Shown here piece by piece: positions 4,332 to 34,859 of a stretch of DNA of 64,000 nucleotides (within the stretch, counting starts at the first letter, position 1; the number at the start of each line of letters is the position of its first letter). Origin of the DNA: Dimorphilus gyrociliatus. Lineage: Eukaryota > Animalia > Annelida. The stretch lies in assembly GCA_904063045.1 (NCBI GenBank), contig CAJFCJ010000019.1, positions 372,001 to 436,000 on the forward strand, written 5' to 3'. The position numbers and the translations under genes are program-made. The notes beneath the pieces were generated by a model that saw only the letters and a program-made list of their open reading frames with translations, ran no database searches and was not told the DNA's origin.

Positions 4332-4425
4332 TTTGGAACGATCGAATTTACTAAGCGGAAACGGAAATGGGGAATCACTAACTCATTTCTAGCAGACGAA
4401 TTTTCAAAGTAATAACAAAGTTTCT

Positions 4426-7174: not shown

Positions 7175-7673
7175 ATTGTTACGCAATGAATTGGGAGGTG
7201 ACGTACGACATTATATTTACATGCAAAAAGTTATTAATACATCTAATTATTGATTTATCTAATCTAAAAATCGTCAATAAAACCGGTTATCTATCGCTTA
7301 TTACAAGAACGTTTTATTTATTTAAATAATCGGTGCCTTTTTAATGAGTATCGTATCATTTTTCGAAGCGGTTAATTGATTTGCAACAAACCGCAGCCAA
7401 CGTCGTAACCGGCTGTAAAGGAAGCATTTCGTACTTGATTTGTTCACAAGTTGAACCAAGTGGTCGTATAAAGTTCTTAATTGTTGCATATCTGAATGAT
7501 AAGAAGAGTGCTTTTTAACATCTATCAACTCCTATTCCAACGCCGAAAGAAGTAATTTAAAATCTTTACCGTGACATTACTATGGCTTGGTAAATGAACT
7601 AAGTTTTATAGGCCTGAAAAAGATTATTTGAACAAAAAGAATTTTGAATATTTTTATTGAATATTTACGGAAA

Positions 7674-12693: not shown

Positions 12694-12776
12694 ATAAACA
12701 GTACCAGTGTATAATCAACAATACGGACGTATATATTATGAGAATTAATATATACGAATCATATTGTAATTGTGGC

Positions 12777-12807
<31 letters not shown>

Positions 12808-12813
12808 TATACA

Positions 12814-12847
<34 letters not shown>
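12777..12847. repeat. (AT)n microsatellite, interrupted, 3' of vestigial
   Basis: Direct reading. Further (AT)n tracts lie at about 13024-13049 and 13674-13696. Confidence 0.95.
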
Positions 12848-12850
<3 letters not shown>

Positions 12851-15080
12851 CTAGTCAAGAAAATTAAAAGAAAGTTTCTCTTTTTTTCTACTGGACAGTA
12901 TTTTTTGCCGATATAAAAAAAAATGCTATTTGTCATTTATAAACAGTGCATATATGTATTTATTTATAAATGTATATTTTCCAGACAGTATAAGCATATG
13001 TGTGCTATAATTATTTTATATTCATATATATATATATATATATATATATGTATACTTATATACATGTTTATTCTGTGCATCTTTTCATTTTAAAGTGGCT
13101 GTAATAAAAATATACACGATATATTCTTTATCTTAATTACTAGTTTACGGAGTTTTTTTTCCTGGAAGGAAAACGATAAACGTAGCCTTTTAAATAATAA
13201 TTAAAGGAGGCGACTTAAACATGCGCTGTCATCACGTGACCTGTCACTATGGCGACGTTCACGCGGAGAGGCGATTGGCTCAATTATTCGACCGATTATT
13301 GTTTTAGCGGCAACATCAATACAGGCGACTTTGGCAATCTCTTTATGTAAAAACCATTGGTGGTTCTATTCATTTGTTCTTTCTTTCCTTTCCATCTTCT
13401 ATCAAACCCTTTTTTATGTTAATAAAACAAATTCCAGTCTGTCTTTCTTTTTTTATAAGACGAAATTGTAAGCGGCTAATTAACGATCAACATCAAACAG
13501 AATGATATGAAAATGAATAAAAAGAGGACAAGGTGTAGAATGACATATAAAAGCGAAAATATATTAGGAAAAACCGTCTCGAATTATTCTTATCGATCCA
13601 ACAATTTATCTTCGGTACTTTTCGACGATGCGAAAAAGCAGCCAGTATAATTTATAGGTTTATATAAAAGGCGTATATATATATATATATATATATGTAT
13701 ATTTGTATGTACAAATATTTCATCCATTTAAGAAATACATATGTTTATACTGAGGGTTTATCAATGAATATGAAAAATGTATTGCTATGAGTTTTATTAA
13801 AGGAAAGAGCTGGAATCAAAGACACATAAAACGTGTTTTTTAATGGATTATTATATACAAATTATACACAAGACATACACAGCGTATGGAGAGGAATCGT
13901 AGATTAAACTTGCACAAGTATATTTATTTGAAGGATCGCAATAATAGCTAGCGAACGTAAACTGACTAAACACTCGAGTAAAAGAGCAAATAGATTTAAA
14001 AGTGGTTCCCACCAACTGGTGCTTTCAATTTGTGCCATCATTTCTCGCTCTCGCGCCTTTACCGCCCTCAGGCGAATCCCTTATCAGACGTCACCTAGTC
14101 GTAAAGCGTTACTGATTACTTACACGTGACAATTCCCGAGAAAGGAGCGTCGAAAAATTCCAAAATCCGGCCGGTCATAGGCGCAAGGTTAGGAAACGAT
14201 ATAAAAACGTCCTCGGGCTTCAGAGACGTTTTTTTATAGAAACAAAATATCATTTTGGCCCGCGGGCAATAAGTGCAAGTTGCCGAAAACAAGCCGAAGC
14301 GGACAGATAAGAAAGGTTTGAAGATGAGCTAGATAACAGACGCTTATCGGTCGGACGCGTTTTGTGAGAAAAACTTCCGCCAACTAGGATCCGCTCATTG
14401 ACAGAATGCAGAATTCAGAGTTTGCGACGGAAAGTCGCGTGTCAAGTCGGTTGCACAGTATCAAAACCGTCAAGGGCGTAACGCCAAGGAATATTTGGTT
14501 TGGCTGCCAGTTCTATTGACGGAATGTAATTGGATGAGAAGCGCCAATTCCAGACTTTCGCAGCAGCAGGTCACTATCTTACGTCATTTAACAGAGATTG
14601 GCCGTTCCGGGGAATTTCTTCCAGTCTTGCGATGCAAACTAACAAAATAAGTCAATAAAGGAAATAAAATGACTTATTAACGATAAGCTTTCGATTAAAT
14701 TTCACTCGGCTTTCCGCCCGACATGCGTTAATCGGTTAATGCGCGTATACATTATACGTATATATCAATTTAATACACTCTTCTTATGTACATTGTATAA
14801 AGGGATAAAAGCGATCGGCCAACTGATAAATGCAATTGCGTGGTCAGCGAGTGGTCAAGTGACTCCCGCAGAGAACAAGGCAGATAACGGAAAAATCACT
14901 TTCGTATGCTTTATATACATATTATACTATTTTCTTCACTCTGCACTTTAAAACTATAAACATTGTTGTCTATATCAAGAATTGAAACATGATAAAAAAA
15001 ACAAGTTATGTAACATAAATATAGCTATAAACTTTTCTGAAAGTGTCAAATAGGATTCGTTGAGCGAATCGGCAATGCCA

Positions 15081-17312
15081 CTATGACGTCATATCCGCTA
15101 AAGCTTCCTTAGCTTTATTCTTGCTTTCAATTTCCTTTGCCTCTTTATCCAATAGATATTCATGCCATTTTTTATCGCGCAACTTTCTTTCTTCATCTGT
15201 TTCTTTAATAGCATATTTTGTGCGACCGTCCCATCTCTCGGCTTTCAGCTGCCTGGACGCGTACCATCTCCCGTGTAAATTTTCAATGCACTTATCAGCG
15301 GATTCGAATTCTTTAAAGTATACTTGAACGACGCCTTCAGGGTGTCTATCATGGAGTACAACTTTTTGAAGATTATCAAACTTTTCACACTCTTCTCGCA
15401 TATCTCGCTTGATTTCATCGATTAAAATGGGATTCGTCTGCAAGATCATACGAAGGAACGTTAGTTATGTATGTAGTAGAATAGGGTCGCGCCCTTGGAT
15501 AAGCCCGGTTGCGGTTAAAGGTGCCTGTCACAACACGTAGAGTAAAAACGGACCCCCCGAGGCACGTCCGTGCCCACTTGAGCCCCATCAACGCCCATAT
15601 TTGGACGTCGCATTATATGAGCATGGTCACAGTATTAACCTACTTTCTACCAAATCGTCAGGGAAACGAAATCTGCAATGTATTACGATACGAAACTAAT
15701 AAGAAACGCCTTTCTTTAAGAACGAGACGTTAATTTATTGCAAAGCGTCGAGTGGACAGGGGCGATGACGTTTGACGGCTGCGTTACGGCCCTTAAACTC
15801 ATATAAAGAAGCCAACAAAGAGGCTCGTACGCGTTATCTTCGCTGTATGTCAGACGATGAAAGACCAAACGTTGATTAGATACTAATTGCAGGCGCGCAA
15901 CTGCGCCCCCGCCCTCACCTGTTCGCTTATGCATCAAGGCTGCAGTTCTTTCCGTTTAAATAAATTATACAATCTTTTTTCATTCAACTTAAGAAAGAAA
16001 ACTTTCAAACCTCAAATTGCTTTGGATCAAAGACGTTCTGTAAAATTACAATCTTTTCATTCTTGGATCTTTCTCCTAAAAGCTTTTCCGGTTGCCAAGC
16101 CAACAATCTGTAAGAAAGTGATTAGTATTCATGAAAAGAAATATTCTACTTTAGCTGATACATACTTTTCTTCTTTCAATTTCATTTTCTTCTTCTCTTT
16201 GTTTGTTAACTTTCTTCTCTTTTTTGTTGGGTCATATTCTCCTTTTAACTCAAACTTGGCCTTCTCGACTGATATTTTATAACCTCTAATATCTGACCCA
16301 TCCAATATTTGTAAAGCTAAATCTACAGATTCACTCTGTTGGGGAACAGTTGTTTAAGTGAATATAATGCGCCATCTATCATCGTAAATAGAAACTAACT
16401 TTTATATAGCAACAACGCCCATCTCCTTTTGGATTACCTTCGTCGTCTTTATACAGTTTTAGCTTAGGTTTATTAGTTAAAGGATCGAATTGGATAAGGC
16501 CAACTTTCTTCATAAAATTTTCAAACTCATCAAATGTTACATCAAATGGCAATCCAGCAACGTAAACTGTACAATTTTTACCTTCATCAACATCGAACCA
16601 ACCTATAAGCACAAAAGTATGTAAGTAATTAAGACAGAATGTTATTGATAACCTTACCTTCAGTCTTATTTTCCTCAACAGGTTTTTTATCGCCTTTTTT
16701 CTCAGTTTTAGCACTTTGTTGATTCTTTTTTTTATCTTCTGCTTTCGCTTCATTTAACGCCGTTCCTGGATTTACATAGGCCGCATACCATTCCCAATAA
16801 CTTAGTTTATCCTTCTCATCCACGGTTGGAAGGTAAGTGTCCGTATAATATTTATAATAGTGTGCATGATGATAATCTGTTTCTTGTTTATTCGCTTCGC
16901 CTCCGCTTTGATTATCAGTTTTATTATAAAATATGTCTAAGTATTTATTGTATGCTTGAGACATTTCCTTCGAATCGAATGTTGATTCAGTACTTGTGCT
17001 TCCACTGGAAGTTTGGTAATTTTGATTGTACCATTGGTAGAAATGGCTGTAGTCTGTTGTAGTAGGATTTGCGGTCGTTGCTGTAGTAGTCACACAGGAG
17101 GTTGAAGAAGTAACATTACATCCATAGTTTAACTGATATTGTGCTAAAAAATCGGCGTCGATCTTTGGGAACCAAGCTTCTTTGACTGGATCCCATTCGA
17201 AAACAGTGCCATCATCATCGGTTCTCGTTTTAGCATGGCCTTTTTTTTCAGACTCTTCGTAGATTTTTTGCAGGCGAATTTGTTCTTCAAAATCCTCGTC
17301 GCTGTCCCCCAT
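15081..17312 (-). CDS. HTATSF1: HIV Tat-specific factor 1 / Cus2 / barricade (U2 snRNP factor, RRM + UHM)
   Basis: DDDGTVFEWDPVKEAWFPKIDADFLAQYQLNYG, RRM1 VYVAGLPFDVTFDEF...KLKLYKDDEGNPKGDGRCCYIK, and UHM KIVILQNVFDP...IKRDMREECEKF...HPEGVVQVYF...LHGRWYASRQLKAERWDG. Confidence 0.95.
16369..16382 (-). promoter_or_regulatory. CTCF-like motif in an HTATSF1 intron
   Basis: Minus strand ATGATAGATGGCGC versus CTCF core CCACTAGATGGCGC. Confidence 0.4.
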
Positions 17313-17749
17313 TGCTATCGATACCTCTTTTATCGTTCTCTTAAGTTTTAAAGAAATAGGTATGTATAACTTGAAATAAGGTGAAAACTAAATATCAAAT
17401 GAAGTGTAGTTTCGATTAAATTTCTTGTGCTTTGAAGATATTGTTTATTTCAGTACTTTAATAAGAAACCTCAATGATCAACGATTCATAAACGTTAATT
17501 TGTTTTCAAAGTTTTCAGATGTATTATTTCTATGAGAAAACAATAATGGAATGTTTTGTCAATCTGTATGCGCCATTTTGAAAGTTTTCTTTTGTCATTA
17601 CCTTCATGTTTGTTTCGAATCATATTCGATTTAGATTCGATATCCAAGGCATTCCTACATTTACTATTATTAAAAATCGTGCTAACGGCACTCTTCTAAG
17701 AACATCATTTTGTACTTCTTCTTGAAAAGGTGTTTTTGCTATTCCTGAC

Positions 17750-18469
17750 ATGAAGAGGATTTGCAGTCCGTATAGATTACTGATATATTCGGTAACGATG
17801 TTTATTTTATTCCTCATTTATTTGTCTCTCAAACCATCATCCGCTCGAAATGCGTGGTATACAAGAAAAGCCAAGTGCAGTTATCCATCATCTCATACTC
17901 AGGACCTTGTTAGTCTAGCAAAAAAAATTAAATTAACTTTAGAAAAGACTGATATTGAATTTTTTTTATGCTATGGATCATTGTGGGGTGCTATACGGAT
18001 AAAGCGTCAACTACCTTGGGATAAAAACTTAGATTTTTGCATTATGAACGAAGACTTAACAAAAATTGAAGAAGCTACAATATACAGAGCTTTTCGTCAT
18101 ACAGGTGTTACAGTGAGTTATAATCCCAAAGAGGGAGAATATACAGCATACTTTCAGTCGGCGACTGCTTCTCTCACAGTCTTTCAGCTATCTGAAGATT
18201 ATGCATCCCTTGAAAGAATAGGTTGGAGTCATAAATTATTTAAAAATTCTCCTGGTCAACAATTTCCAAGTAGACTGGCTGCTCCACCATTACCATTCAT
18301 AAAGTTTTTTAATGAATCAATGCCTGTTCCCAAGTAAGACTTATTTTTATAAATATATGATTATTTAAGATACTAATATTTCTTAATATATAACAGAGGT
18401 GATATTGAAATTCAAAAATTTCTCTATCCGGACAATTGGTTTCGCGAAATGAAACCTCCAGGATGTTAA
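17750..18469 (+). CDS. LicD/fukutin/FKRP-like nucleotidyltransferase-fold type II membrane protein (2 exons)
   Basis: N-terminal signal anchor, FLCYGSLWGAIR...LPWDKNLDF motif, and exon 2 PRGDIEIQKFLYPDNWFREMKPPGC*. Confidence 0.8.
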
Positions 18470-19073
18470 ACTGATTTGTCACTACAACAAGATCTGTTTT
18501 CTTCACTAAGTGAATATTTTATAACTATATTTAACCAACACTGTTTAACTTGTATTGCATAATCTTTGATATAGCAATCATTGGTACTGAAAAACTGTGT
18601 AAAAAGTATTTACAAACAAATGTAAAAAGGTTATTCAATAAACATGAAATCAAATTGAAAAAAAGAAAACGCATAATATTTTTCTTTCGTTATGACAAAA
18701 ACTTTTAATGAGTTTTTTCTTTTTATAATAAGATTTATATAATTTAACTTTTTTTCTTTTTAAAGGATTTTTAAAATATCTGCAGAAAGAAAGAAAAGAA
18801 AAAAGATACCTTTTTCTTTTTTTGTTTTCATTTTTCGCATTTGCAGTTTTAGATTTAAACAAAGAAAATAAAACAAAATATAACAAACAATACAATTAAA
18901 GCAATAAAATTAATGTTTTATTTTTCCTAATTTGAAAAACTATAGAATATTTGGTACAAGTGTGATAATTATGAATACTGACTGCATGTAAAGCTTTTGA
19001 ATGGCGAATTTGAATATTACATATAAAATAATACGTGGCAAGGCGACGGTTGCACCGGGGAACTATTAATTAA

Positions 19074-21031
19074 TTAGTCGAAGAACTCGTCTTTTTCCGT
19101 ATTTTTTTTACCAGTTGCGCTAAAATTCTGCTTCCTTTGAAAAGCGTAATCGAAACTGTCAGCCGTGCTTGCTGACAAACCAGACATTCTTGCTTTGCGT
19201 TCGGCACTCCCTCGAACCGCCGTTAGCTGTTTGTGTGGGCTTTCTCTACCTGAATAAATTCTCTCTGACATATCAGCTGTATTAGCCTCGCCGTCGAGCC
19301 ACGAGTCGTCTATGAATAAATTATGTAAATTATACACAAGTGTAACCACAAAGTGAAAAGCTTACTATCATCGTTGTTATACTGTTCGTCCTTTTCTACT
19401 TCATTGTAATCCATTCCGCCGCCTTCCTCTATTTCTTTTTGCTTCTTTGCTCTTTCTAAAGCTCTCTTGGCTCGTTCTTCTCTAGCCCTTTTCTTTTCTT
19501 CCTGTTGACGACGTTTTGCCTCTCGGTTTTTATCTGCTGATTTAAGTTTTTCTTCTATTTCTTGAGCTTTTTCGGTGTTGCTATGATCGAATTCCTTGGC
19601 TTGTTGAAGGGCTAATCTCTTTTTAGAAGTTTTCCTACTCTTTTGTTTAATCTTTTCCAATTGCTAGAAAAAGAACGAAAATGTTTATAGAGTCAACAAG
19701 TAAATTCAATTATTCTCAGGCACGCACCTTTTGACGTTTCTCTTCTGCAATTCGTTGCTTTTCTTCCAATTCACTGGCCGTTAGCTTAGGAGCATCGGCA
19801 AGAGGGTCTAATTGCAATCTCTAAGTATACGTACGAATGTTATCAGTCTTTTATGATGTTAAAACTTTAAAATTACCTGAAGTCTCCTAGGTGGTTTTTT
19901 GAGTAAGTTATCAATGCGATCCTGGCCATCAAGTGAAACGCAAAAAGCTACCGGTTTGTTAACTGAAAGAAGACGGTATCATTAAAACTGATCACGAACA
20001 GTGAGAGAAGTCTGTATAAATTGCAAATCGATAAGCTTTTAAACAGAATAAACCTAGTTAATTGTGGTTGCGGTTGGTGACGTAGACTTTATTAAGGAAT
20101 AAAGAAAGCATTGCTGAGTAAATATTTCCTTAATAAATTATAAATTCACAACTCCTTACGACTGTTATGTAGTTGACAATTAAAAGCTTTAAAACTTGTT
20201 TAAAGTATAAATAAATCAGGATCACTTTTTAAGTCTACGAGAGTGAATGTCCCTTTAATATCTCTCTTCGGTAAAGGCATTAAAATATACAGTATATACT
20301 ATTATATTTATTATCTTTGTATTGAGATATGCACTTATATATTATTTTATAAAGGGAGATTATTCTGGTATTAAATAATTATTGTTATTTGGAAATCAAC
20401 TTCTTTTGAGTTTGAACAGATATAAAAGGCTTAATAGCTTTACTTGTATAAAGTATATTTAATTGTTCTAATATAATTTTAATCAAGGAGAGAGTTTATA
20501 CAAGCTGATGTACAGTTATTAAATGGATCATCTGAATAATGTAAACGTCTAGTTGAAAGAGAAACAGGCAGACTAAGAGAGAAAGAGAGAAAGAGAAGAG
20601 AAAGCGAAATATAAGATGTGAGTAGTAAATTATCTTAAGATTAAAAGTAATCTTTTTTCTGGCGATTTTTTTGTACTCATGTATACCTTTCGTCAAAGAA
20701 TGTTTTCTTATAGCTACAAGAACAGGTGTAGTCCGATAAAACATTTGTTAAGGTTTGCTTATGGAAATATTCTTATCGATTAGAAATAAATCGATATTTA
20801 ACAACCTAGAACTTTTTTAAAAAACTTACGAGGTAAGACAGGTAATTCGGATTGTTCCAACGATGGTTGAACTTTTGCAGATCTTCTACTACCTGAACTT
20901 GGCTTGCTGATTGTTCCATTTTTATGTTCCTTTTCTGACTCTTTATTTTCTTGAACGTTTTCTTTCTCATCATCATTCTTTTTGTTTTGTTCATTTTCAA
21001 CTTCTGCTTGGGCAGACGCGCCACAGCCCAT
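19074..21031 (-). CDS. Stathmin-domain protein (STMND1-like) with N-terminal acylation motif
   Basis: MGCGAS N-terminus. Spliced internal exons AFCVSLDGQDRIDNLLKKPPRRLQ|RLQLDPLADAPKLTASELEEKQRIAEEKRQK| then coiled coil IEEKLKSADKNRE...RAREERAKRA (stathmin KKPPxRL and EEKxxxAEExR motifs). Confidence 0.7.
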
Positions 21032-21935
21032 TTCCTTCTATACGGATAGAGTTTATTAACTGCAATCCCTTTTTAATCTTTTTTAATAGCCCTTGAATAA
21101 GCTCTTAGTGATGAACAAAGTCCAGATTATAAAAAATTGCTGACAATTATAATTCTCTATTTTTCAGCAAAATAGTTTAATACGAAATCTGAAAAGAAAC
21201 ATGTTTGCAGAGTGTCAACTGATCGATTAGTATTTAGAACTCTACATGACTTGTAAACATAAATGGTCTGTCAAGTCCACAACGTACTTGGCAAACCATT
21301 GATCCACGTGAGAAAAAGTTTGTTATATATTTTCTCTCTTGTGTACAATCAACTCTAATTAATTAGTATCTTTCTTAAGCTGTTTATATTTACCTGTTTT
21401 TTCTATTCTATTGGTATTGGAATAGAGTTTACATTTTCATTAGAAATGACGTCGAAAAAATTCTTCGACACTCAGATAATGCAGGAATGTGTGTGATCGG
21501 CGCGCCATGGCGACTAGTATAAACAGTAGAGGGCGTCGTTTTAATAATATATAAAATTTCTATTAATTTGTTTTTGAAGAATAAAAATTTTTACAATATA
21601 AAATAGATTACAAAATCATTTTTGTATTTTATACGAAAACTATGCTTAGCTATTGACTTCCGGTGTACCAAAACTGATTGTTACAATTATTTCGATTTTT
21701 AACATGAATGAGTTATGAGCCTAAACGAAAGAGGGAAATTGCCTCAGACTATTCAGAGGAAGCAACTTGTTAAATAATTGCTTTCTTAAACAAATTACTT
21801 TCAAATTATTCCCTTACACATGATTCGTAATTGAATTCATAAAAATTCCATTTACAAAAATAAAAATCACCTATAACTTCCGCTTCAATAAAGCTGTAAA
21901 TTTAGATTTATTAGTTTCTGGGATATTTTTGACTT

Positions 21936-22892
21936 TTACATCATCATTGGTATTCCTCCCATCATACTCGGCGTTCTCATAGGAATATTCATGGGCATTT
22001 GCATACTTTGAGCCATTGGCCCCATTGACATCATCATGCTAGGGCTTCTCATTGGCATACCCATCATACTGGGAGTTTGCATTCCACCCATCATACTTGC
22101 GGTCCTCATAGGCATGCCTCCACCCATCATCCCTGGACCTGCCATCATACCGGCTCCCCCCATTGGCATACCCCCTCCCATCATTCCATGAGTCCCCATT
22201 TGCATCATGCCACCCATATTGTTCATCATACTTGGAGTTCTCATAGGCATACCGCCTCCCACGCCACCCATTCCTCCCATCATACTGGGTGTTCTCATAG
22301 GCATACCCCCTCCCATACTACCCATTCCTCCCATCATACTTGGCGTCCTCATAGGCATACCTGAACCCATTGCCCCCATCATACTTTGAGTTCTAGCAGG
22401 CCCCATCATACTTGGGGTTCTTCTAGTCACGCCACCACCCATCATACTCGGTGTTCTGTTGGGTGGGCCGCCAATCATGTTAGGTGTCATGGCAACAGAG
22501 CCTCCACTTATCAATTACATAAAACAAAGTTATACATAAAATATTGAACGGGAGAGCCATTATATCGATTATTCTTTTGTTTTAGCTTACCTATGGATAT
22601 ACGACGTGGCTCTACCAGCTCTAGTGCTTGTTATTGACGGTTGTGTGTTCTGGCTAATTACACCCATTGAAAATTCAGCATCTATTTTTGATTGTTGATA
22701 CTTCCTAATAGCTCTAATTAATAAATAAGTAACTGCATACCCAAAAAGTGCCACGCCAACTGAACTAGATAAAACGATAGCTAGAGAAGCAGCTTCAGAA
22801 AGTTCGTCATCTTCTAAGTCATTAGTATTTCCGTTATCACATAAAAGGGCAGTAAAACTTTGGCATAGTATATAAAGACTAATTAAAAACAT
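21936..22892 (-). CDS. Orphan single-pass membrane protein with Met/Gly/Pro-rich repeat cytoplasmic tail (2 exons)
   Basis: Signal peptide MFLISLYILCQSFTALLC, acidic ectodomain and TM (LAIVLSSSVGVALFGYAVTYLLI). A phase-2 GT-AG intron (22590-22507) joins in frame to a tail with 10 copies of [RQ][TS][PQA]SMM. Confidence 0.75.
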
Positions 22893-23179
22893 TACTTAAT
22901 AGACAATTATTTCGGTAGTATATTGCTTATGTTTGTAAGTAGTTCATTATATAGAAAAATATCTTTAAAATATATTTATTATATAATAATTATTCAATAA
23001 CATCTCCATTAACACATTCTCCAGTCTTTTATCAAGTAAGAAAATATTTAAAAATTAATATATATCATTTTTAAACGTGTAATAAAAATATGAATAATTC
23101 TACAAATTCTAAAAGTAAAATCTAGTGTAGAATACCTAAAGAAACAAGAATGTTTGAACAAGTAACAAAGCAAATATAC

Positions 23180-23210
<31 letters not shown>

Positions 23211-23334
23211 CGTTAATAAAATTGATGAGCTGTCTAATAATGGTAATGAATTTCAGCAAATTAATCAGTTGAATAATAAATAGTAATGTATAATAAATTG
23301 ATTAAATTTCAATATATTAAAACTAATAAAACTT

Positions 23335-23751
23335 CTATCTGTTTATATCTTTATAGCTTCTTACCCAAGATAATGGGACTAAGCCACTTGCACTTTTACC
23401 GTGCAATTCTCGACCTATGGCACTTTTTTCCTTATTTCTTTTCCTACGTTTACGTTTCTTCCGTTTTCTTTTATGTCTAACATTATCTATTCGGCTAATT
23501 GATTTTTCACTCTGAATTCTTGCACTTAATTTACTTGCTGCTGCTATACTAAAATTACTCTTTGATATAACACTAATATCATTGAAATATTCAGTTAAGT
23601 CTTTAGCTTGTTGTTTTTGTAATATTAGTATTAATATTGCTGATATAAACAATCCAACAAGAAATAATATGATTGTCAAACATAATATTTTAATTATTCT
23701 ATCACTTGAAAATAAATTAACTGGTATTTCTGATAGAAAATTCTCGGCCAT
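23335..23751 (-). CDS. Orphan protein with one N-terminal TM helix and a polybasic stretch; 3' end uncertain
   Basis: ATG in good context (AAAAAATGGCCG), hydrophobic segment ILCLTIILFLVGLFISAILILIL, and KRKRKKRKRRKRNKEK. A strong donor (TGG|GTAAGA) near 23364 suggests another exon that I did not find. Confidence 0.5.
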   Translation of the reverse strand: MAENFLSEIPVNLFSSDRIIKILCLTIILFLVGLFISAILILILQKQQAKDLTEYFNDISVISKSNFSIAAASKLSARIQSEKSISRIDNVRHKRKRKKRKRRKRNKEKSAIGRELHGKSASGLVPLSWVRSYKDINR

Positions 23752-23841
23752 TTTTTGTTTTCGTTAAGTACTTTCAAAAAAGTCTTACGATGTTTTTATA
23801 ACTTAGATAAAAATCAAATTCTTTTTTAAATATATTCATAT

Positions 23842-23855
23842 CCGCTAGATGTCGT
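23842..23855 (+). promoter_or_regulatory. CTCF-like motif between the orphan TM gene and the BHMT 3' end
   Basis: CCGCTAGATGTCGT (12/14 to CCGCTAGATGGCGC), isolated in very AT-rich DNA. Confidence 0.55.
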
Positions 23856-24283
23856 ATTTATTATATTTAATATATCTATGTATACAATCTATATTTTTCT
23901 TTCCTTTGTAAAGTCGTCTTATCCCCTCTATCTTTTACCTTCTAAGAAATGTCTTCTAAAGGCAAATCTATTGAAAAATATTTAATTTTATATGAGTATA
24001 TAGGCCTTACTAAACCTATATCTTTTCAAATACATTATATCCGAAAAATAAGACACCCAACTGTTAGCAAACACTTCTCAGTAAGTTTTATAATCAACCA
24101 TGACCTAGTTTAATCAAATCCTCAAAAAGTACGCTTATAAAAAAAGACGGAGCAATTTATTTAAATGGACGACATTTTATTGAAAAAGAAAAAGATTTTA
24201 TAATCAAAAGTTTTCATTCGACATGTTCAAAATATCATCAAGTCTATGTCTGTTAATTAAATGAAAATTAACCCATATCTAGT

Positions 24284-25607
24284 TCACTTTCTATTACGAT
24301 TGGTTATCAATTGATTAATTTCAGTATCAGTTGTTACATCTTTCTTTTGCTTCAAAATATCATCTCCCTAAAAATAGAACAATTATTGATAAATAGATAA
24401 ATACTGTAAACAATAACTTGATAATATACTTACAGCAGTGACACCCCAGGCGTCTGGTTCCGACATAGAGGGGCATAACGGCCTACCAGAACCTGGTTTC
24501 AAGTTTTCCCAATAATCTTTTCTTGCTCTAGCTCTTACCCACGGTTTCGTGTGAAGACGTAAACCTTCACCCCATTTATCGTGCTTTTCTGAAGCATTGC
24601 AAGATTTTCCTCGCTCTTTCTCCAACTCTTCCGAGATAGCTCTAATATGATAGGGTTCGAAACCGCAACAGCCGCCAATATATCTTACACCTATTTCATA
24701 CGCTTCTCTAGCATATTTTTGAATATCCCAGCGGGTGCATATTCTTGATTCAAGAGCGAAGGGAAATTCTGGTAAGTCTATGAAACCTTGTTTATTACAG
24801 TCGGGAGTCATAAAGGCTAGTGGTTGACTCATCAAGAAAGGTTTAAGACCTGCAGCATCCAAGCCTTTCTTCATCTCTCTAATACCTTCAAGAACGGTAG
24901 GGGGATCGAAATGGCAATTAATACCAACAATATCTGCTCCTGCCTTTGCCATTCTTACACCGCATTCGGCCGTGCTAATATTGTGCAAATCTCCTTCTGG
25001 TCCAATACACATAGTTGAAGCAACAGGTAGTCCAGATTCTTTACAAACAGAAATAGCCCATTCCATCTCTTCTATATGCTCAAAGTATTCGCATAATAGG
25101 AAATCTACTTTGTTGTCGACGAAAACCTTCACTTGTTTACGGAAAATTTCTTGAACAGCTGCTTTGCCGTCACCGCTCAAATAGGTGGGAGTTTGAGAAA
25201 TACCTCCCAATATCAAGGCGTCTCCTTCATTAGCCACTTGTCTGGCAATATCACAAGCGGCTTTATTAATTTTCTCACCTGTATATTGGGACTGAGCCTT
25301 ATTTCCTCTATTTTCCAACTTGTCATCGCTAGCGTAGAAAGTAAAAGCTTGCATAACATCAGCTCCGGCGTTTAAAAATTCTCTGTGCAATTGACGAACA
25401 CCATCTGGATTTTCAACAGTTGCCTCGGGTGTCCAAGGCCCAGCTTTAACGTATCCTCTCTTTTCGAGAGCGAAAACAAATCCTCCGTCTCCTACAACAA
25501 CACCATCTCTAAGACGTTCAAGAATTCCTTTCTTCGGCTATATGAGAAGAAATAAAAGGCATTGTTTTAATGATATACATTAAGTTGGCTATTGAGTTAC
25601 TCACCAT
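24284..25607 (-). CDS. BHMT: Betaine-homocysteine S-methyltransferase (3 exons)
   Basis: M|[39 protein letters not shown]...[12 protein letters not shown], Zn ligands in GINCHFDP and [14 protein letters not shown], and last exon [27 protein letters not shown]. Confidence 0.97.
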
Positions 25608-26215
25608 AATTGCAACTGACCAAGTCTGAATAGGTTGTAACGTCTTAACTGTTTTTAAACTAAATAAATGGGTGATCTAACTAGATATGTTTAGGTAAGT
25701 AGCTACATGAACTTGACTTGTATTATTCATGCAAATCAAAAGTTATCACCAAGTTGTTTATAGCCAATTTATAGATTGTATTTATTTATTCTTTAATGTT
25801 TAGCATACTTTAGGAATATAATTAGTCTTTATCAGTAATGTTCTTTCCATGAGTCAACACCCCTATTCCTTGTTGTAAACTCAGCTTTTGGTGAGCCAAG
25901 TTCGTTTCATCCTGAGACAGTCCGAAACCGGTTAAATCTAGTTGTTATTTTCTCCAAGCCTGCCTGGAGGATTACTCAAGTCGAAAGGTCGTACATGTTT
26001 ACCTTTAAAAGCTGAGTGTTAAATTAAAAGCTTAAGATATCAATGTAAAAGCGTCTATACAAAACATCTATTGCTATTTGTTTACAGTTTAATCTATTAT
26101 CGAATGAAAAAGTATTACCTTTGTTTGTTTTCTTTTGACAATAAAAAGTCAGAGTCAAATTCAAACAATTTCATAAAGTGAGATGCTTTGGTAAGAACGC
26201 TTATTCCTCGAAGTA

Positions 26216-29127
26216 ATGAAGCGTCTTCTTTTCAACATAGGCCGAAATTCGGCTTGTCAACAATGGTCTAGATATTTTTCCAGGTGTGTATCATATAAAA
26301 GATAATGATTATTTTGTTCAAAAAAGGCCTAGATTGCCTGTGAGACTTTCTTAGATAAGAAAATAATAATAATTATATTGAATAGTGAACCATCTTCTCA
26401 AGCCAGTACTGTTGTCATCGGAGGAGGATGCTGTGGTGTAAGTTTAGCTTATCATTTGGCAAAGGCTGGTCAGAAGGATGTAGTTCTTCTGGAAAAAACA
26501 GAATTAACGGCTGGTTCAACTTGGCACGCAGCTGGTTTAACAACCTATTACAATCCTGGTATCAATATGAAGAAAATCCACCATTACAGTTTAAGCCTGT
26601 TCAACCAACTGGAGAAGGAAACAGGTCAGCCTGTTGGTCTTCATAAGTGTGGTAGTTTGAGAATTGCACAAACACCAGACAGAGTGGATGAATTTCGTCA
26701 TCAAATGTCGAGACAAGGGTGGAATGAAGCCGAACAGAGACTGGTATTACCAGAAGAAATAAAAGAGATGTTTCCTCTTTTAAACATGGATACGGTAAGA
26801 TCTTATCTTGTCTATTTGATTTTCATTACTTTATATTGATACATTTATAGATATTGGCTGGTTTATACAATCCTGGAGACGGCCACATAGATCCATATTC
26901 CTTAACACAGGCCATGGCCGCAGGGGCTAGAAAATATGGAGCCAAACTTATTCAAAATGCGCCTGTTCATGGTTTAAAACAGAGATCTGACGGAAAATGG
27001 GAAGTAGATACCGTCGGTGGAACTATTATTGCTGACAGGATTGTCAACACTGCTGGGTTTTGGGGAAAACACGTGGGTGAATTGGCTGGTATCCATCACC
27101 CTTTGGTGCCCATTCATCATCAATACGTCGTGACGAAAACCATACCTGAAGTTAAGGCGTTGAAAAAAGAACCACCCGTTCTAAGAGATCTTGAAAATTC
27201 TTATTATCTTAGACAAGAACGAGATGGACTATTAATAGGTCCTTATGAACGACAAAGTCTCATGAAAATGAGCGTTGATTGGTATGATGACGCTCCACCT
27301 GCAGATTTTGGTCGAGAATTATTTGAATCTGATTTGGAAAGGCTGGAAGATTATTTATCAGCCGCTATGTCACTGATTCCAGCTATGGAGAATGCTGAGA
27401 TACAAACTGTTGTTTGTGGTCCGATAACTTATTCTCCAGATCTGTTGCCAATGGTCGGCCCACACAGGGAAGCAGACAATTATTGGACTATCATTGGAGC
27501 CTCCTACGGGATAATTCATTCTGGTGGATTGGGAAAATACGTTAGCGACTGGATAATTAATGGGGAGCCTAGTTTCGATCTGATTGAAACCGACCCCAAT
27601 CGATACTCAACTTGGACAAATCGAGAATATACTCTGGCAAAAATTAGAGAAAGCTATGGTATGAATAACGCGCTGGCTGTTCCTCATGAAGAAAGAGAAG
27701 CGGGAAGACCTACTATAAGGGTCAACATGGAACTTTTCAAGGCGTTGAAAGCCAAAGGTGGAGAATTCGGCTTTAAATCAGGGTGGGAAAGTCCATTATG
27801 GTTTGCGAAAGAGGGAGATGAGTCAGGCTATAAGCCAAGCTTCAGGAGAACGAACTGGTTCGAACCTGTTCGAAGAGAAACAGAGTTGGTCATGGAAAAA
27901 GTAGGAGTTATTGACTTGACATCTTTCGCTAAATTTAACGTTGAGGGAAAAGACGCGTCAGCTTTTATGGACTATGTAGGGGCTAATAATATCCCAAAAG
28001 AAGGCAAGATTGCTTTGTGTCATTTACTCACGCCCAGTGGAAAGGTCTATGGAGAGTTAACCGTGTCTGCCTTACCCGACGGCTCCTATTTTTGTGTGAC
28101 CGGTACCATTTTTCTTTATATTAAATAATGAATATCTATTAACTACTCGTTATTCAAAATTAGGTGCTGGATCAGAATTTCACGATTTACGATGGATGGA
28201 GACGATTGCTAAAGAAAAGGGGTTCAATGTTTCTATTTCCAATTGCACAGAGAAATATGGCTGCCTCGGTCTTGCCGGACCAAAGTCGAGAGATGTTATG
28301 AAACGTTTAGTTGATAATGATTTAGATATTTCCAACGAAGCTTGGAATTTTATGGAAGTCAAAGATATTCAAATGAAAGGTATAAATGTGCGGGCCTTAA
28401 GAGTATCGTATACTGGTGAATTGGGCTGGGAATTATATATGGATATGGCAGATACAATAAAGATTTATAATATGATCCAAGAAGAGGGAGAATCATTTGG
28501 AGTAGGTGATTTCGGAGGCTTTGCGCTAAATAGTTTGAGATTGGACAAGGGCCTTAGGGCTTGGGGATTAGAGGTAAGCATAAATCTTTGATTAAATGCT
28601 GACAACTGATTAATGTCATTTACAATTATATAGATGAATATGGATAAAGATCCCATTCAAGCTGGTCTTGGAATGTTTATTAAAACAAATAAGGTTTGCT
28701 GAGTACTTAGACAAGTTTTTTTTTTGTTTTTTAAATAAATAACTCTAAATAACTCTTACTAATTGCCCAGAAAGTGGATTTCGTTGGAAAGGAGGCGATT
28801 AAAAAAATGCTGTCCAATAGGCCTACAAATGTGTTGAGTTTTCTACACATAAAAACTGATGATATTGATTCCGAAGGCAACGAATCGGTATGGTATAATG
28901 GAAAAGTCGTCGGTAATACAACATCCGGAACGTATAGTTACACAGTCAACACAAATGTTGCATTCGCATATTTACCAATTGATTTAAGTGTTCCCGGAAG
29001 TAAAGTTCAAGTAGAACTTTTGGGCAAGTTTTATGACGCAATAGTACAAAAAGGACCACCGTTAAAGATTGAAAGTGTAAGAGCACCGGAAGAAATAGAG
29101 GAGATACGTAAACACTTTACTAATTAA
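26216..29127 (+). CDS. DMGDH: Dimethylglycine dehydrogenase, mitochondrial (multi-exon)
   Basis: Presequence-like exon [25 protein letters not shown] motif VVIGGGCCG, covalent-flavin His in [24 protein letters not shown] (DMGDH-type rather than SARDH-type), and a GcvT-like C-terminal half ([11 protein letters not shown]). Confidence 0.95.
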
Positions 29128-29622
29128 AATATTAATAACAGTAATAAAAAATTATAATAAATAATATACGTGTCGTTTCTATTGAAATAAATGTTCTAAT
29201 TATCTAAAAGTGTTCTCTTCTTTCTTTTACCTTATTTGGCACGTAACACTTTAATCGAAGGAGAATTTATTAACGAAACTAGCACTGCAGGGTACGACAA
29301 CTACAATTCTATTTCTTCACGTTTTTATTTTATTGTTTATATTTCGGGAAGTAACAGATAGTTATCCACAATCTGGGGCTTTTTTTATATAAACTAAATT
29401 AATTATACAGTTAAGTAATGATACAGTAATTAGACACTTTATAATCCAGGTAAAGTTGATAAAAACAAATACGCTTTTTCTTTTATAAGTGGAGCATGTT
29501 TTGAGAAGAAAAAAAACTAAAGCTAAAAAGTAGGGCAAAGTTGAATACTAATCAATACTAATCTGCTACAAAAATGACAAAATAGATAGGAAAAAGTAAA
29601 GAGAAATCATCCACAGTAGATA

Positions 29623-30846
29623 TTAATTACTTAGAACTATTAATTTTGATTTGGAATCAATGATGTAAACTTTTATCTGATCAAAATGATAATGAGAGTC
29701 CATTACGCAAACGGGATTCTCAAGATCAATAATATTATCGACGAAATTTCCTTCTTTATTTATCATCCTTAAAAGTGTTTTTGACGATTCAGCAATTAAA
29801 TAACCGCATGGTAAAGTAGTAATAATAATTGATTCGCTCAAATCTTTTAAAAGTCTCACATCGGTTAATGGACTATAATTAATACTTTTAATCATTTCTC
29901 CATTTTCTATATCGCATATTTCGAGCGATTCACCTTGGAAGACAACAAAATGTTTCTTGTTGCTTGATAATTTAATACTTTTAACCATTTGGCAGGTTAT
30001 TCTCCATAATAGAACAGTTGTGTCGTATTTGTACAAAGCAACCCAATTCTTAAACGAGCTACCAACTAGTAAACCTTTTTCTGCGCATTCTATAAAGTTT
30101 GCATTTAATTCTCCACGCCAACTAACAAATTCTAAGTTAGGAAAGTCTCCCTTCAATATAAATCTGGCTCCATTGTCGGCAACGTGTATGAGATACATGC
30201 TCTCCATGCAGCTACTTAAAGCTAAATCGTCCATGAAAGTATTAGCCGAGTAAATCTCTTTAATAAAAGACCCTTTAAGGTCGTAGAAGTCTATTCTAGA
30301 AACTGATCCAGTATAAATTAATAGATATAAGCCTCTACAGCATGAAACGATACTGTAAATTTCTTGTCTTCCTTCTCTTAAGTTCACAACATTTTTTATT
30401 TTTAGACGAACTTCTTGAACGCCTGTACAATTTTTTATTTGGACAATTTCTCCAATTTCCGTTTCGTCATTTTGCCACAACAATTTAACTTTTGTTAACA
30501 AAATGTCTTTCCTTCTATTTAATAATTTGCTTTTAAGCTTTATTCTCTCTTCTATAAACTCAACAGGATCCAAATTTCGGAGAGCGTCGAACAACTCTTT
30601 AAACTCATCAACTTTTCTCCTCTTTAGGTTAAAAGCGTCCCTTAAATCCTGAGTAATCCTAATTACACTGTTGTCGTCGTCATCGTGCCGAATTTGCTGT
30701 ATTCTTTCATCTAGTCTCCTTGATAATTCTGCTTCTTCCGATTCAATTTTCTCTAATATGTATTCTATTTGATGAATAACAAGATCATAATTAGCGTCTA
30801 AACTATGCACATCTTCAATTTCATCTTCACCCTCCCAGGTAGCCAT
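29623..30846 (-). CDS. Uncharacterised intronless protein: N-terminal coiled coil plus probable beta-propeller (TRIM/NHL-like tail without RING/B-box)
   Basis: 407-codon open frame from ATG 30846. Heptad-rich N-terminal third, then repeating short beta-strand pattern. The fold call is inference. Confidence 0.7.
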   Translation of the reverse strand: MATWEGEDEIEDVHSLDANYDLVIHQIEYILEKIESEEAELSRRLDERIQQIRHDDDDNSVIRITQDLRDAFNLKRRKVDEFKELFDALRNLDPVEFIEERIKLKSKLLNRRKDILLTKVKLLWQNDETEIGEIVQIKNCTGVQEVRLKIKNVVNLREGRQEIYSIVSCCRGLYLLIYTGSVSRIDFYDLKGSFIKEIYSANTFMDDLALSSCMESMYLIHVADNGARFILKGDFPNLEFVSWRGELNANFIECAEKGLLVGSSFKNWVALYKYDTTVLLWRITCQMVKSIKLSSNKKHFVVFQGESLEICDIENGEMIKSINYSPLTDVRLLKDLSESIIITTLPCGYLIAESSKTLLRMINKEGNFVDNIIDLENPVCVMDSHYHFDQIKVYIIDSKSKLIVLSN

Positions 30847-31173
30847 ATCCTTTATAAAAAAGAAGGGAGATACGTGATGAGACGAATTTCTTCGAAATGA
30901 ATTGAACAAATGAACGAATAGTTAGAAACAAATAAAAGTGAGCTGTATTCTAATTAGGCTTAAGTTTTTTTTGTATTTAGAAAAACAACAACAAAAAATA
31001 ACCTTATTTTCCTCCATTTTGCTTTAAAGAATACAACTTTTTCGATTGGAATATAAGTATGGAGTTTATTCTTATAAATAAAAATAATTATATGTATTGT
31101 ATATATATTTAAAAAAAAAACCAACTTAAAATAACATATATATAGTATATATAGAGATTTATTAAAAAGTGAA

Positions 31174-33447: not shown

Positions 33448-34859
33448 ACAAATGATATTTAATACTAATTTGTTACAATATAATTTGGTAATAAAGATAG
33501 ATTGAAGTACGAAATGGAAGAGAATAAAAGATTCTTTAACTGTGATAATCATCTCCTACATTTACAAAATGATAGAAAAAGGCTAATGGATAACTACTTA
33601 CAGAAACCATAAACTAGTTTAGGCAAATATCCGAAATATGATCAGCGTCTCCCCTTGCACGTTCTCGAAACGCTCAAAATTGGTTATCATGTTTACTCGA
33701 ATCTTTTACTTCTCTTACTTCTTATAAATATATATACATTTGTATATATTGTTGTTGACTGGGAAAATTACTCTTTATCATATAAATAACGGTAAATAAT
33801 ATGCAGATATTGAGATCAAAACGTCACTATTCCAACTGTAATATATGGAAACCTATTCCAACCTTTAGGGCATAATCTTAAAATGACTATAAGTTTTTTT
33901 TTAAGTCGATTAATTAGAACGAGGATCGAGTTTTCTTATAAAAGACAGTATTACAAATAGTAATTAAAAATGCTAAACTAATTTTCTCCAACTTAATGAA
34001 GAGAGGGGAGAGAGTAAAGATCTATTGGAATAACAAGGAACAAAACAAAGAGAATAATGAGGATTAAAGAAAAAAAATATATATGGAGTTTCGTTTAACG
34101 AAGGATATCGTGGAAGATTAAAGAACTAATTTTTGTCTGCTAGTGTGCTAGTTTTTAAGGTCTTTGTCCAATGCCTATTTCATTTATCTAGGAAGATGTA
34201 GGATTAGGCTAAGGTACCTGGGGAAATTTTGTCAATTCTATTCAAACTATACATAGTCGAGATTTAAATCAATAGTGGCGGTCGTCCAGAAAATTACTTC
34301 TAATTAAGCCGGAAAGTGGTCCGATACTTATTGGAATGGAAGCTGCTACTATATGCATTCGCCTTCTTGGAAGATTAAATGCATCGATAGGCCTGTATTC
34401 TTTAAAGGCTTATGGTGAAAAGAAATTAGAATAACACGCAATGCACGGATTGGGAAAGTAGAAATCGTCGTTGGCGTCAATTAATGAGCCTGTACTCTCG
34501 CTCCAGTGATCCCTTTGCAGTATTGGATATAATTTGTATGGAAATAAGCGACAAAACACGTCGGCACGATCCCTTGACATGTAATATATGAGCATTCAGT
34601 AAAGCTGTCAAGATACGTTAACTTAACGATTTTCCTGTCAAAACAATACCGACGCAAAAAATGACGCTTGGCGATGCTTTGTTTTATATCTATATTTATT
34701 TTTTTCCAACACAAATTCATTCCTTTTTCAGGTATACAATTATTTTAACGCTCGACTGTTTGCAACGCCCTCCTGCGTCGATTCTAGACGCCTTTTAGTA
34801 GCAGGAAGTTTGGTCGTCTCCCTCTCTATAGCAGTGCCGACAATCACTGCAAACATCGC

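Follow-up and report, generated by a model that had tools for sequence, protein, structure and literature searches.

A head-to-head pair of BHMT and DMGDH genes in the annelid Dimorphilus gyrociliatus and its conservation among animals

The window analyzed here is a stretch of 64,000 nucleotides of the Dimorphilus gyrociliatus genome (contig CAJFCJ010000019.1, positions 372,001 to 436,000 of the forward strand). In this window, the gene for BHMT occupies positions 24284-25607 of the minus strand and the gene for DMGDH positions 26216-29127 of the plus strand. That is, the two genes stand head-to-head. An earlier note on this DNA had placed the two start codons 608 bp apart on opposite strands in a probable protostome. 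On re-reading, the distance proved to be exactly 608 bp, and the host is indeed a protostome, since D. gyrociliatus is an annelid. The two products catalyze consecutive reactions: cytosolic BHMT converts betaine and homocysteine into methionine and dimethylglycine, and mitochondrial DMGDH converts dimethylglycine into sarcosine, passing the methyl group to folate and the electrons to ETF. Dimethylglycine inhibits BHMT as its product.

The BHMT gene consists of three coding exons encoding 396 aa, separated by introns of 67 and 66 nt. Exon 1 (25605-25607, minus strand) contains the ATG alone and is followed by the 67-nt intron (donor ATG|GTGAGT); the same ATG-only exon is found in a close dinophilid relative (L009). 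Exon 2 (24434-25537, minus strand) encodes 368 aa and contains the entire catalytic barrel with the Zn ligands. Exon 3 (24284-24367, minus strand), of which the AG acceptor and the frame were checked, encodes the C-terminal 27 residues and ends in the TGA stop codon at 24284-24286. The 3' UTR covers at least 24170-24283 on the minus strand, because the X2 and X8 contigs begin at 24170 and enter the last coding exon.

The protein matches the Pfam S-methyl_trans barrel (PF02574) with E = 3.6e-39 and 135.8 bits, against a cut-off of 22. When the frame at 24383-25390, which comprises most of exon 2 and 16 read-through residues, was used as the query, rat BHMT (1umy) was matched with 526 bits and about 72% identity. 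At E <= 1e-30, 2916 homologues, named BHMT across animal phyla, were found. Cys217, Cys299, and Cys300 (rat and human numbering) are the zinc ligands of BHMT, and Cys 159, 241, and 242 of the query align with these residues of 1umy, within the NCHFDP motif and a second motif. The protein also has the animal-type C-terminal extension, as the alignment runs gap-free to rat residue 377 and is followed by the 27-residue final exon. It is collinear with the solved BHMT structures, unlike the shorter plant and fungal HMT type. We regard the gene as an orthologue of BHMT (EC 2.1.1.5) with betaine as the predicted methyl donor; a BHMT2-like preference for S-methylmethionine would also be compatible with the sequence. 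D. gyrociliatus has a second BHMT copy, which is unlinked (C14) and has no DMGDH neighbour. This copy is an independent duplication, separate from mammalian BHMT2.

The DMGDH gene consists of six exons encoding 851 aa, with introns of 102, 56, 61, 60, and 77 nt, the ATG at 26216-26218, and the TAA stop codon at 29125-29127. All exons lie on the plus strand. The 5' UTR covers at least 26069-26215 (X1 record 3 spans 26069-26219), and X2 record 10, which covers 26124-26281 and then splices, also represents this 5' end. Exon 1 (26216-26283) runs from the ATG to a GT donor and is 86% identical to its counterpart in L009. Its 22 residues, as read by eye, form a basic N-terminal presequence lacking acidic residues. 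Exon 2 (26386-26794) carries the FAD-binding GGGxxG motif and the histidine for covalent FAD, and gives 207 bits to human DMGDH (5l46). Exon 3 (26851-28102) contains the rest of the DAO domain, FAO_M, and the start of GCV_T; over 418 residues it matches rat DMGDH (4p9s) with 579 bits and human 5l46 with 574 bits. Exon 4 (28164-28573), flanked by joints of 61 and 60 nt, carries the folate-binding GCV_T domain (Pfam E = 1.2e-30). Exon 5 (28634-28693) encodes 20 aa, is 85% identical to L009, and is bounded by joints of 60 and 77 nt in X8. Exon 6 (28771-29127), of which the frame was checked, carries the GCV_T_C barrel (Pfam E = 1.1e-17) and the stop codon.

The DAO, FAO_M, GCV_T, and GCV_T_C domains follow one another in this order across exons 2-6, all above the Pfam cut-offs. 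The histidine of the TWHAAG motif aligns with human His91, and a histidine 18 residues further on aligns with human His109. The roles of these two human residues have been described, and His91 bears the covalent 8-alpha-N3-histidyl FAD (PMC5082570). Two other genes with FAO_M, paralogues of DMGDH, are present in the annelid genome and are only 30% and 35% identical to it; a search of the ESM Atlas placed these two in generic 'GCV_T' and 'FAD oxidoreductase' clusters and in neither a SARDH nor a PDPR cluster. Judged by its match scores and by these paralogues rather than by a full tree, the gene is the orthologue of DMGDH (EC 1.5.8.4) and not of SARDH or PDPR. Import into mitochondria and electron transfer to ETF are its predicted roles. 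The assignments of both genes in the earlier note are right, as shown by the Pfam domains, the rat and human matches, and the retained key residues.

All introns of both gene models are GT-AG introns, and all seven (two in BHMT, five in DMGDH) were seen as joints in assembled contigs of the public RNA runs X1, X2, X8, and X9, from which transcription start sites cannot be placed. The joint of the 66-nt BHMT intron (24366/24433) is present in contigs of all four runs, and that of the first DMGDH intron (102 nt) in X1, X2, and X8. The joint 25537/25605 of BHMT is present in X8, whose evidence is joined by loose contig ends in X1 and X9 that run on into the letters of exon 1; the BHMT transcript reaches at least to about 25615. 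These results show that both genes are intact and that their transcripts are made and spliced, and chance is ruled out as an issue. The depths of the BHMT contigs were about 3 to 100 times those of the DMGDH contigs, which is unlike a 1:1 output, although contig depths are unfit to rank genes.

The spacer between the two start codons (25608-26215, assigned to no strand) has 32% G+C, and the corresponding distance in L009 is 613 bp. Within the spacer lies a conserved non-coding block with its core at 25890-26040 (no strand) and weaker conservation from about 25855 to about 26045. Its identity to L009 is 88-98% in 40-bp windows, equal to that of first and second codon positions, whereas in the same comparison third codon positions (0.53-0.54) and introns (0.52) are saturated, and flanks are at 0.49. 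A blastn comparison of the block with L009 gave 146 bp at 89% (E = 2e-37). The block contains indels of 1 and 4 nt relative to L009, which argue against coding. An origin from a repeat or transposon was ruled out, as the block is single-copy in the 77.9-Mb genome. As judged from the two dinophilid sequences, this stretch of about 150 bp is under strong purifying selection.

The block begins about 280 and ends about 430 bp upstream of the BHMT start codon. Relative to DMGDH, it is located about 25 to 180 bp upstream of the most 5' letters seen, which come from low-depth RNA contigs. It may be a control element of the pair. It adjoins the 5' end of DMGDH, however, and could serve DMGDH alone. 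Beyond dinophilids, the spacers of ten other species yielded no match above chance level, either by blastn-short of the block or with three motifs chosen by eye (AACCGGTT, TGTTTAC, and AAGGTCR). An exact 24-mer scan of the JGI metagenomes for the block gave no match. The only words that the block has in common with the DNA upstream of the BHMT paralogue and of the two DMGDH paralogues are AT-rich 10-mers expected by chance.

Could the block instead act as a transcribed functional RNA, that is, as an unannotated small RNA gene or as a regulatory 5' leader, for example an element for metabolite or translation control of DMGDH or of a long BHMT isoform? Record 17 of X8 crosses the whole spacer without a break, the conservation is at the level of first and second codon positions, and a minus-strand upstream reading frame of six codons plus a stop lies in a stretch that is invariant in both species. 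Against these points, Rfam gave no match at E <= 1 over 24000-29500 and none at the gathering score in the whole window, and the tRNA search found none. The folding energy is unremarkable (z = -1.4 and -1.5), the 10-nt inverted repeat flanking the block in D. gyrociliatus is not kept in L009, and the low-depth contigs of X1 and X2 begin downstream of the block. We consider a functional RNA rather improbable and leave a structured RNA in the spacer as a minor rival.

Then we surveyed the DNA around the BHMT genes of 11 other animals, in which the orthology of the neighbour was established by tblastn in eight and partially in the chiton. An orthologue of DMGDH was the divergent upstream neighbour of BHMT in Capitella, Owenia, Lingula, the jellyfish Rhopilema, Acanthaster, amphioxus, Darwinula, and the dinophilid relative. 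In the spider the divergent neighbour was recognized at the domain level only, and in the chiton the two genes are adjacent yet in tandem. In Saccoglossus, the sole hemichordate sampled, no neighbour of BHMT was found within 10 kb. Adjacency thus holds in 10 of the 11 animals, which represent seven phyla, and the orientation is divergent in nine of these ten. The neighbouring DMGDHs were 53-67% identical to the annelid protein by tblastn, and the gaps between the gene calls ranged from 0.1 to 5.7 kb (the smallest being 0.12 kb).

The earlier note had claimed a very old pair and had named, as the result that would speak against it, that the genes are unlinked in most invertebrates. Our survey showed the opposite: they are divergent in eight of ten further invertebrates (Annelida, Brachiopoda, Cnidaria, Echinodermata, Cephalochordata, and Arthropoda), with the same layout from jellyfish to amphioxus. 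Because this layout is found in annelids, a brachiopod, a jellyfish, a starfish, amphioxus, an ostracod, a spider (at the domain level), and, according to the literature, mammals, the pair predates the split of cnidarians and bilaterians. These results show that the head-to-head adjacency is ancestral and dates to at least the cnidarian-bilaterian ancestor. The linkage can also be lost, as indicated by the changed orientation in the chiton and the lack of a neighbour within 10 kb in Saccoglossus. A separate origin of the layout in annelids and vertebrates has next to no chance of being right. Nothing specific speaks for it, except that selection for co-regulation could in principle assemble such pairs, and it is contradicted by the same neighbour in the same orientation in nine non-vertebrate species of six phyla, one of them a cnidarian; for any one gene to have a particular other gene as its 5' neighbour, the chance is about 1 in 10,000-25,000 per genome.

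An ancestral pair might nevertheless be kept by inertia, with few harmless breakpoints in a short spacer and no shared regulation, the block being simply the promoter of DMGDH. The very unequal contig depths of the two genes, the position of the block right at the 5' end of DMGDH, the flip in the chiton together with the linkage not seen in Saccoglossus, and the second BHMT copy that lacks a DMGDH neighbour are all in line with such neutral retention. On the other hand, the pair persists in Capitella, Acanthaster, Rhopilema, and the spider with gaps of 2-6 kb, in which breaks would be easy. It has also endured for more than 550 million years, in at least seven phyla, its products are consecutive enzymes, which is rare for chance neighbours, and the mouse data described below show shared enhancers. 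We therefore think that neutral retention is unlikely.

We consider it likely, instead, that BHMT and DMGDH are an ancestral divergent pair of orthologues which has been kept by shared 5' regulatory DNA, including the conserved block. Both genes would rely on regulatory sequences of their common 5' region. Most breaks between the two would then harm at least one of them, and the pair would stay together. In the annelid, the shared element would be the conserved block, in a genome stripped of most distal regulatory DNA. Coupling of the two genes would also match the removal of dimethylglycine to its production. In D. gyrociliatus, open chromatin is mostly found at promoters, and distal elements are few (PMC7854359). 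In mouse ES cells, the DMGDH and BHMT genes have common enhancers bound by SPIC and NANOG and are co-induced (PMC11801372). That is, co-regulation has been shown in the mouse by published work, and in the annelid we infer it from the shortness of the spacer and from the block within it.

The mammalian DMGDH-BHMT2-BHMT(-JMY) cluster (human 5q14.1, mouse chromosome 13) likewise has the same two enzymes as direct neighbours with a common 5' region. Human DMGDH presumably stands head-to-head with BHMT2/BHMT. In mammals, however, the tandem duplicate BHMT2 lies between DMGDH and BHMT and the locus extends over tens of kilobases, whereas the annelid locus has one BHMT, start codons only 608 bp apart, and introns no longer than 102 nt (56-102 nt). 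In line with the head-to-head orientation in human, SNP annotations place introns of DMGDH within 2 kb upstream of BHMT2 (PMC12389381). We also observed that Lingula has kept JMY downstream of BHMT, at a distance of about 4 kb.

Among microsyntenic pairs that have been conserved, a 5'-5' orientation, short spacers, co-expression, and intergenic conservation are over-represented (Irimia et al. 2012, PMC3514665). The present pair resembles the co-regulated 5'-5' class of that study, such as HSPE1-HSPD1 and HADHA-HADHB, in its divergence kept across phyla, its short spacers, and its functionally coupled products. Intergenic conservation was seen for the annelid at the level of the close relative L009 and went undetected in the spacers of other phyla. 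Unlike those examples, BHMT is cytosolic and DMGDH mitochondrial, the two are not subunits of one complex, and their co-expression is known from mammals. BHMT-DMGDH is not named in the main text of PMC3514665, a paper on BHMT evolution mentions neither DMGDH nor synteny (PMC4516251), and our literature searches found no paper on this linkage outside mammals. The annelid pair is a newly documented case of a known class, the conserved bidirectional microsyntenic pair.

Most gene order in animals has been scrambled, and consecutive metabolic enzymes have seldom stayed together as pairs. BHMT-DMGDH, head-to-head in jellyfish and mammals alike, is a clear metabolic case among known pairs that are mainly developmental regulators or subunits of single complexes. 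Its retention suggests unified control of the flow from betaine via dimethylglycine to sarcosine since early in the evolution of animals. In GWAS, the human locus has repeatedly been found for betaine, dimethylglycine, and selenium traits, and its ancient architecture helps to interpret the regulatory variants there. With its 608-bp spacer, a single block of about 150 bp, and ATAC-seq data already published, the annelid locus offers a minimal model for the retention of such pairs.

Bacterial clusters for glycine-betaine demethylation (bhmt, dmgdh, etfAB, and sarcosine oxidase) also encode the same two consecutive reactions side by side, but they are intronless and co-directional or convergent, have other genes between, and contain a DMGDH of 28% identity. 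In a MAG contig of Marinimicrobia type (L033), we found a BHMT with 68% identity to that of the annelid (gap-free) and 73% to that of amphioxus. This gene lies 3.2 kb from a four-domain gene of the DMGDH family, with etfAB (its ETF acceptor) and an Fe-S oxidoreductase, and a second MAG has the same junction at 88-91% nucleotide identity. Metazoan BHMT also departs from the tree-of-life topology (PMC4303824). These findings might be taken to mean that the animal pair is the relic of a bacterial betaine-catabolism operon acquired by horizontal transfer. The DMGDH-family protein of L033, however, is only 28% identical to animal DMGDH, so that there was no recent joint transfer of the two genes. 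In a tree too poorly resolved to give the direction of transfer, the L033 BHMT is placed among animal sequences, and this type was not found in 59 other relatives searched; that an animal gene passed into this bacterial lineage is no less likely than the reverse. We found no evidence for a bacterial cluster as the source of the animal pair, and consider such an operon relic very unlikely. A narrower version, in which only animal BHMT came from a bacterial cluster into the animal stem, was fixed beside a resident DMGDH, and is not vertical kin of the fungal and plant HMTs, also seems improbable to us. If BHMT did have a bacterial origin, the head-to-head pair would represent an operon-like arrangement, made by eukaryotes, for a pathway whose genes are clustered in bacteria too. 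The occurrence of an animal-type BHMT in marine bacteria is of interest in its own right, as a lead to the transfer of genes between animals and their microbes.

We built the gene models of BHMT (betaine-homocysteine S-methyltransferase) and DMGDH (dimethylglycine dehydrogenase) from six-frame open reading frames, Pfam domains and direct reading of the sequence; exons were searched one by one and joined only for a check of frame, stop count and length. The locus contains two compact animal genes with introns, BHMT on the minus strand and DMGDH on the plus strand. The first coding exon of BHMT (25605-25607) is ATG alone; a 67-nt intron with a GTGAGT donor separates it from exon 2 (24434-25537), which contributes 368 residues. 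After a second intron, of 66 nt, the last coding exon, of 84 nt with its TGA at 24284-24286, closes the 396-aa product. The six exons of DMGDH (26216-26283, 26386-26794, 26851-28102, 28164-28573, 28634-28693 and 28771-29127) start at 26216 and encode 851 aa, with introns of 102, 56, 61, 60 and 77 nt that are GT-AG throughout. The two start codons are separated by exactly 608 bp, so that the coordinates and the ATG spacing in the earlier note proved to be exact.

Transcription was checked over window 24000-29400 with Logan contigs, not raw reads, of four public runs. Two of these are RNA according to their records, and the remaining two, whose kind is not recorded, have spliced contigs. Contigs of these runs had clean joints at all seven predicted introns. 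BHMT contigs reached 24170 on the 3' side, and DMGDH contigs extended upstream at least as far as 26069. A deep contig of one run (X8, record 17) extended without interruption from the ATG exon of BHMT across the entire spacer (25608-26215) into DMGDH and was spliced in both genes. That is, the two transcribed regions abut or overlap, or the assembler bridged them; a single transcript is not implied. Record 19 of the same run reached more than 1 kb beyond the stop codon of DMGDH and entered the next gene, which is convergent (ORF 29623-30909 on the minus strand); in so compact a genome, the 3' ends of adjacent transcripts probably overlap. Two runs, X2 (a coral-tank metatranscriptome) and X9, carried the same eight single-letter differences in BHMT (24473-25355), so that the public data include more than one strain or population of the worm.

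The large reading frame of BHMT (24383-25390, most of exon 2) aligned without gaps, at about 72% identity, with rat 1umy (526 bits) and human BHMT. It has cysteines at all positions aligned with Cys217, Cys299 and Cys300, which the BHMT literature gives as the zinc ligands. A word search with exon 2 yielded 2916 proteins at E <= 1e-30, and the named proteins among them were BHMT, from cnidarians, spiralians, arthropods, echinoderms, hemichordates, amphioxus and vertebrates. Exon 3 of DMGDH matched the rat and human DMGDH proteins at 579 and 574 bits, respectively, whereas bacterial dimethylglycine oxidase reached only 113 bits. When exon 2 was aligned to human DMGDH, both His91, the carrier of the covalent FAD, and His109 were kept (residue roles in the human enzyme, PMC5082570). 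Of the three FAO_M-containing genes in the genome, the two elsewhere have only 30% and 35% identity to the one at this locus, which is therefore the DMGDH orthologue. Those two FAO_M/GCV_T genes, at G000:C19:295222-297711 (L030) and G000:C1:1059049-1060669 (L031), are presumably SARDH and PDPR. One of them shares a contig with DMGDH, at a distance of only about 100 kb.

D. gyrociliatus also has a second BHMT copy (G000:C14:833646-834707, minus strand; L029 1620-2564), which is 66% identical, has a long branch and a shorter C-terminus, and is flanked by unrelated genes, a repeat protein upstream and a coiled-coil protein downstream, with no DMGDH-like gene. This copy looks like an independent duplication and is reminiscent of mammalian BHMT2.

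In order to judge the age of the head-to-head layout, up to 10 kb on either side of BHMT was fetched in other animals, and the identity of the neighbour was checked by tblastn with the annelid DMGDH exons. DMGDH was located divergently upstream of BHMT in the annelid Capitella (3.8 kb between gene calls; 53% to the annelid-locus DMGDH). The same arrangement, with identities to D. gyrociliatus DMGDH, was seen in the annelid Owenia (1.7 kb between gene calls; 54%), the brachiopod Lingula (0.57 kb; 58%), the ostracod Darwinula (2.3 kb; 53.5%), the echinoderm Acanthaster (4.1 kb; 67%), the scyphozoan cnidarian Rhopilema (2.3 kb; 60%) and both haplotigs of Branchiostoma belcheri (0.12 kb, one gene model; 62%), as well as in L009, a close dinophilid relative (SRR23372228; 613 bp from ATG to ATG; 82%). 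The spider Parasteatoda has a divergent upstream gene at 5.7 kb, encoding 847 aa with DAO/FAO_M/GCV_T/GCV_T_C domains, which was matched at the domain level, its coding exons lying beyond the fetched flank. In the chiton Liolophura the linkage has been altered: the neighbour is adjacent on the same strand at 9.4 kb, with only its last exon in view. Nothing was called or detected within 10 kb of BHMT in the hemichordate Saccoglossus, where the linkage has perhaps been lost.

The identities of 53-67% among the neighbours, against 28-35% for the paralogues and a bacterial family member, indicate that the neighbours are DMGDH orthologues. Since the cnidarian has the pair, it is older than the cnidarian-bilaterian split, and it is not credible that each lineage assembled it separately. 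Thus the very old gene pair proposed in the earlier note is demonstrated by a divergent DMGDH neighbour from annelids to a cnidarian and amphioxus. We take the human DMGDH and BHMT genes to be head-to-head as well. The human gene order is DMGDH-BHMT2-BHMT-JMY, with DMGDH introns less than 2 kb upstream of BHMT2 (PMC12389381). In Lingula, JMY (L003 17146-20832) follows BHMT about 4 kb downstream, beyond an intervening KxDL gene, so that the order DMGDH-BHMT-JMY is common to Lingula and human.

The mammalian cluster and its co-regulation are already known, as is the class of ancient bidirectional pairs, of which HSPE1-HSPD1 and HADHA-HADHB are textbook examples. Our literature search found no report of BHMT-DMGDH linkage outside mammals, although supplementary lists may still contain the pair. 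The annelid locus is a new, well-documented case of this class, and the conserved block in the dinophilid spacer is a new detail.

This block was recognized by comparison with L009. Amino-acid identity between the two worms is about 88% in the large exons and 82% over the whole of DMGDH, and neutral sites are saturated (third codon positions 0.53-0.54, introns 0.52, flanks 0.49). The spacer block at about 25890-26040 (more weakly 25855-26045) is 88-98% identical in 40-bp windows, the level of first and second codon positions, and blastn aligned 146 bp of it at 89% (E = 2e-37). The block is not coding, because it has indels of 1 and 4 nt relative to L009. It matched no Rfam family or tRNA, folded no better than shuffled sequences, and is single-copy in the 77.9-Mb assembly. 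The edge of the block that faces BHMT is about 280 bp upstream of the ATG of that gene, and the other edge lies 24 nt upstream of the furthest-5' DMGDH letters, which come from a low-depth RNA contig. The length of the whole spacer is kept too (608 vs 613 bp), and the odd ATG-only first exon of BHMT is also present in L009.

By eye, we noted in the block a AACCGGTT palindrome (Grainyhead/CP2-like), TGTTTAC (forkhead-like) and an AAGTCG-AA-AGGTCG direct repeat (nuclear-receptor-like), all invariant between the two worms. As candidate regulatory sites these are leads only: none was enriched in the spacers of other phyla, and the block had no significant words in common with the upstream regions of the paralogues. 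Elsewhere in the window, a 154-bp stretch (33576-33727) outside long ORFs is 86% identical to L009, where a gene with a FANCB_N domain adjoins it; the stretch is a short exon, or else a further conserved non-coding element.

The locus thus comprises two intact, expressed orthologues in the ancestral divergent arrangement, with one strongly constrained non-coding element between them. Most likely, BHMT and DMGDH have stayed linked because both draw on regulatory DNA in the 5' region common to them; in the compacted annelid genome this DNA has probably shrunk to the conserved block, which would act as a bidirectional promoter-proximal module. Dimethylglycine is a product inhibitor of BHMT, and its removal should therefore track its production. 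In mouse, SPIC/NANOG-bound enhancers are common to Bhmt, Bhmt2 and Dmgdh, and the three genes are induced and repressed together (PMC11801372). Among conserved microsyntenic pairs as a class, co-expression and 5'-5' orientation are enriched, as are short spacers and conserved intergenic DNA (PMC3514665). For the annelid we infer co-regulation. Against shared regulation, contig depths differ greatly between BHMT and DMGDH, the block may be an element of DMGDH alone, and the altered chiton arrangement and the absence near Saccoglossus BHMT also weigh against it. As for the host genome, the 77.9-Mb assembly and introns of about 60 nt are consistent with the genome as published, which has 73.8 Mb and a median intron of 66 bp, lacks operons and trans-splicing, and has its open chromatin mostly at promoters (PMC7854359).

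BHMT exon 2 was also scanned against prokaryotic genomes. One match lay in a 16-kb MAG contig (CAZGBZ010000024.1, L033), in a series of dense, intronless, overlapping ORFs with the order universal stress protein, Fe-S/CCG oxidoreductase, BHMT, Fic, ETF alpha (etfA), ETF beta (etfB) and DMGDH-family gene. Its BHMT (375 aa) is 68% identical to annelid BHMT, gap-free and with the animal-type C-terminal part included, and its DMGDH-family protein (838 aa) is 28% identical to annelid DMGDH. From the oxidoreductase to the DMGDH-family gene (1082-10155), this is a predicted bacterial betaine-catabolism cluster. A 2-kb contig of a Candidatus Neomarinimicrobiota MAG (L035) has the same oxidoreductase-BHMT junction at 88-91% nucleotide identity, and a junction common to two MAGs indicates that the BHMT gene is genuinely bacterial there. 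BHMT of this type was not found among 59 other relatives searched. In a poorly resolved tree the L033 BHMT fell among animal sequences (73% identity to amphioxus), and metazoan BHMT shows 'non-tree-of-life' behaviour (PMC4303824). Taken together, these sequence relationships suggest that the gene passed between animals and marine bacteria, in one direction or the other; the MAG cluster does not show an operon origin of the animal pair. Two further BHMT matches in assemblies labelled bacterial, the MAG contig CBDDTI010000458.1 (L036, multi-exon) and a tiny Fredinandcohnia scaffold (L034, 717 bp), look like animal contamination in prokaryotic genome entries.
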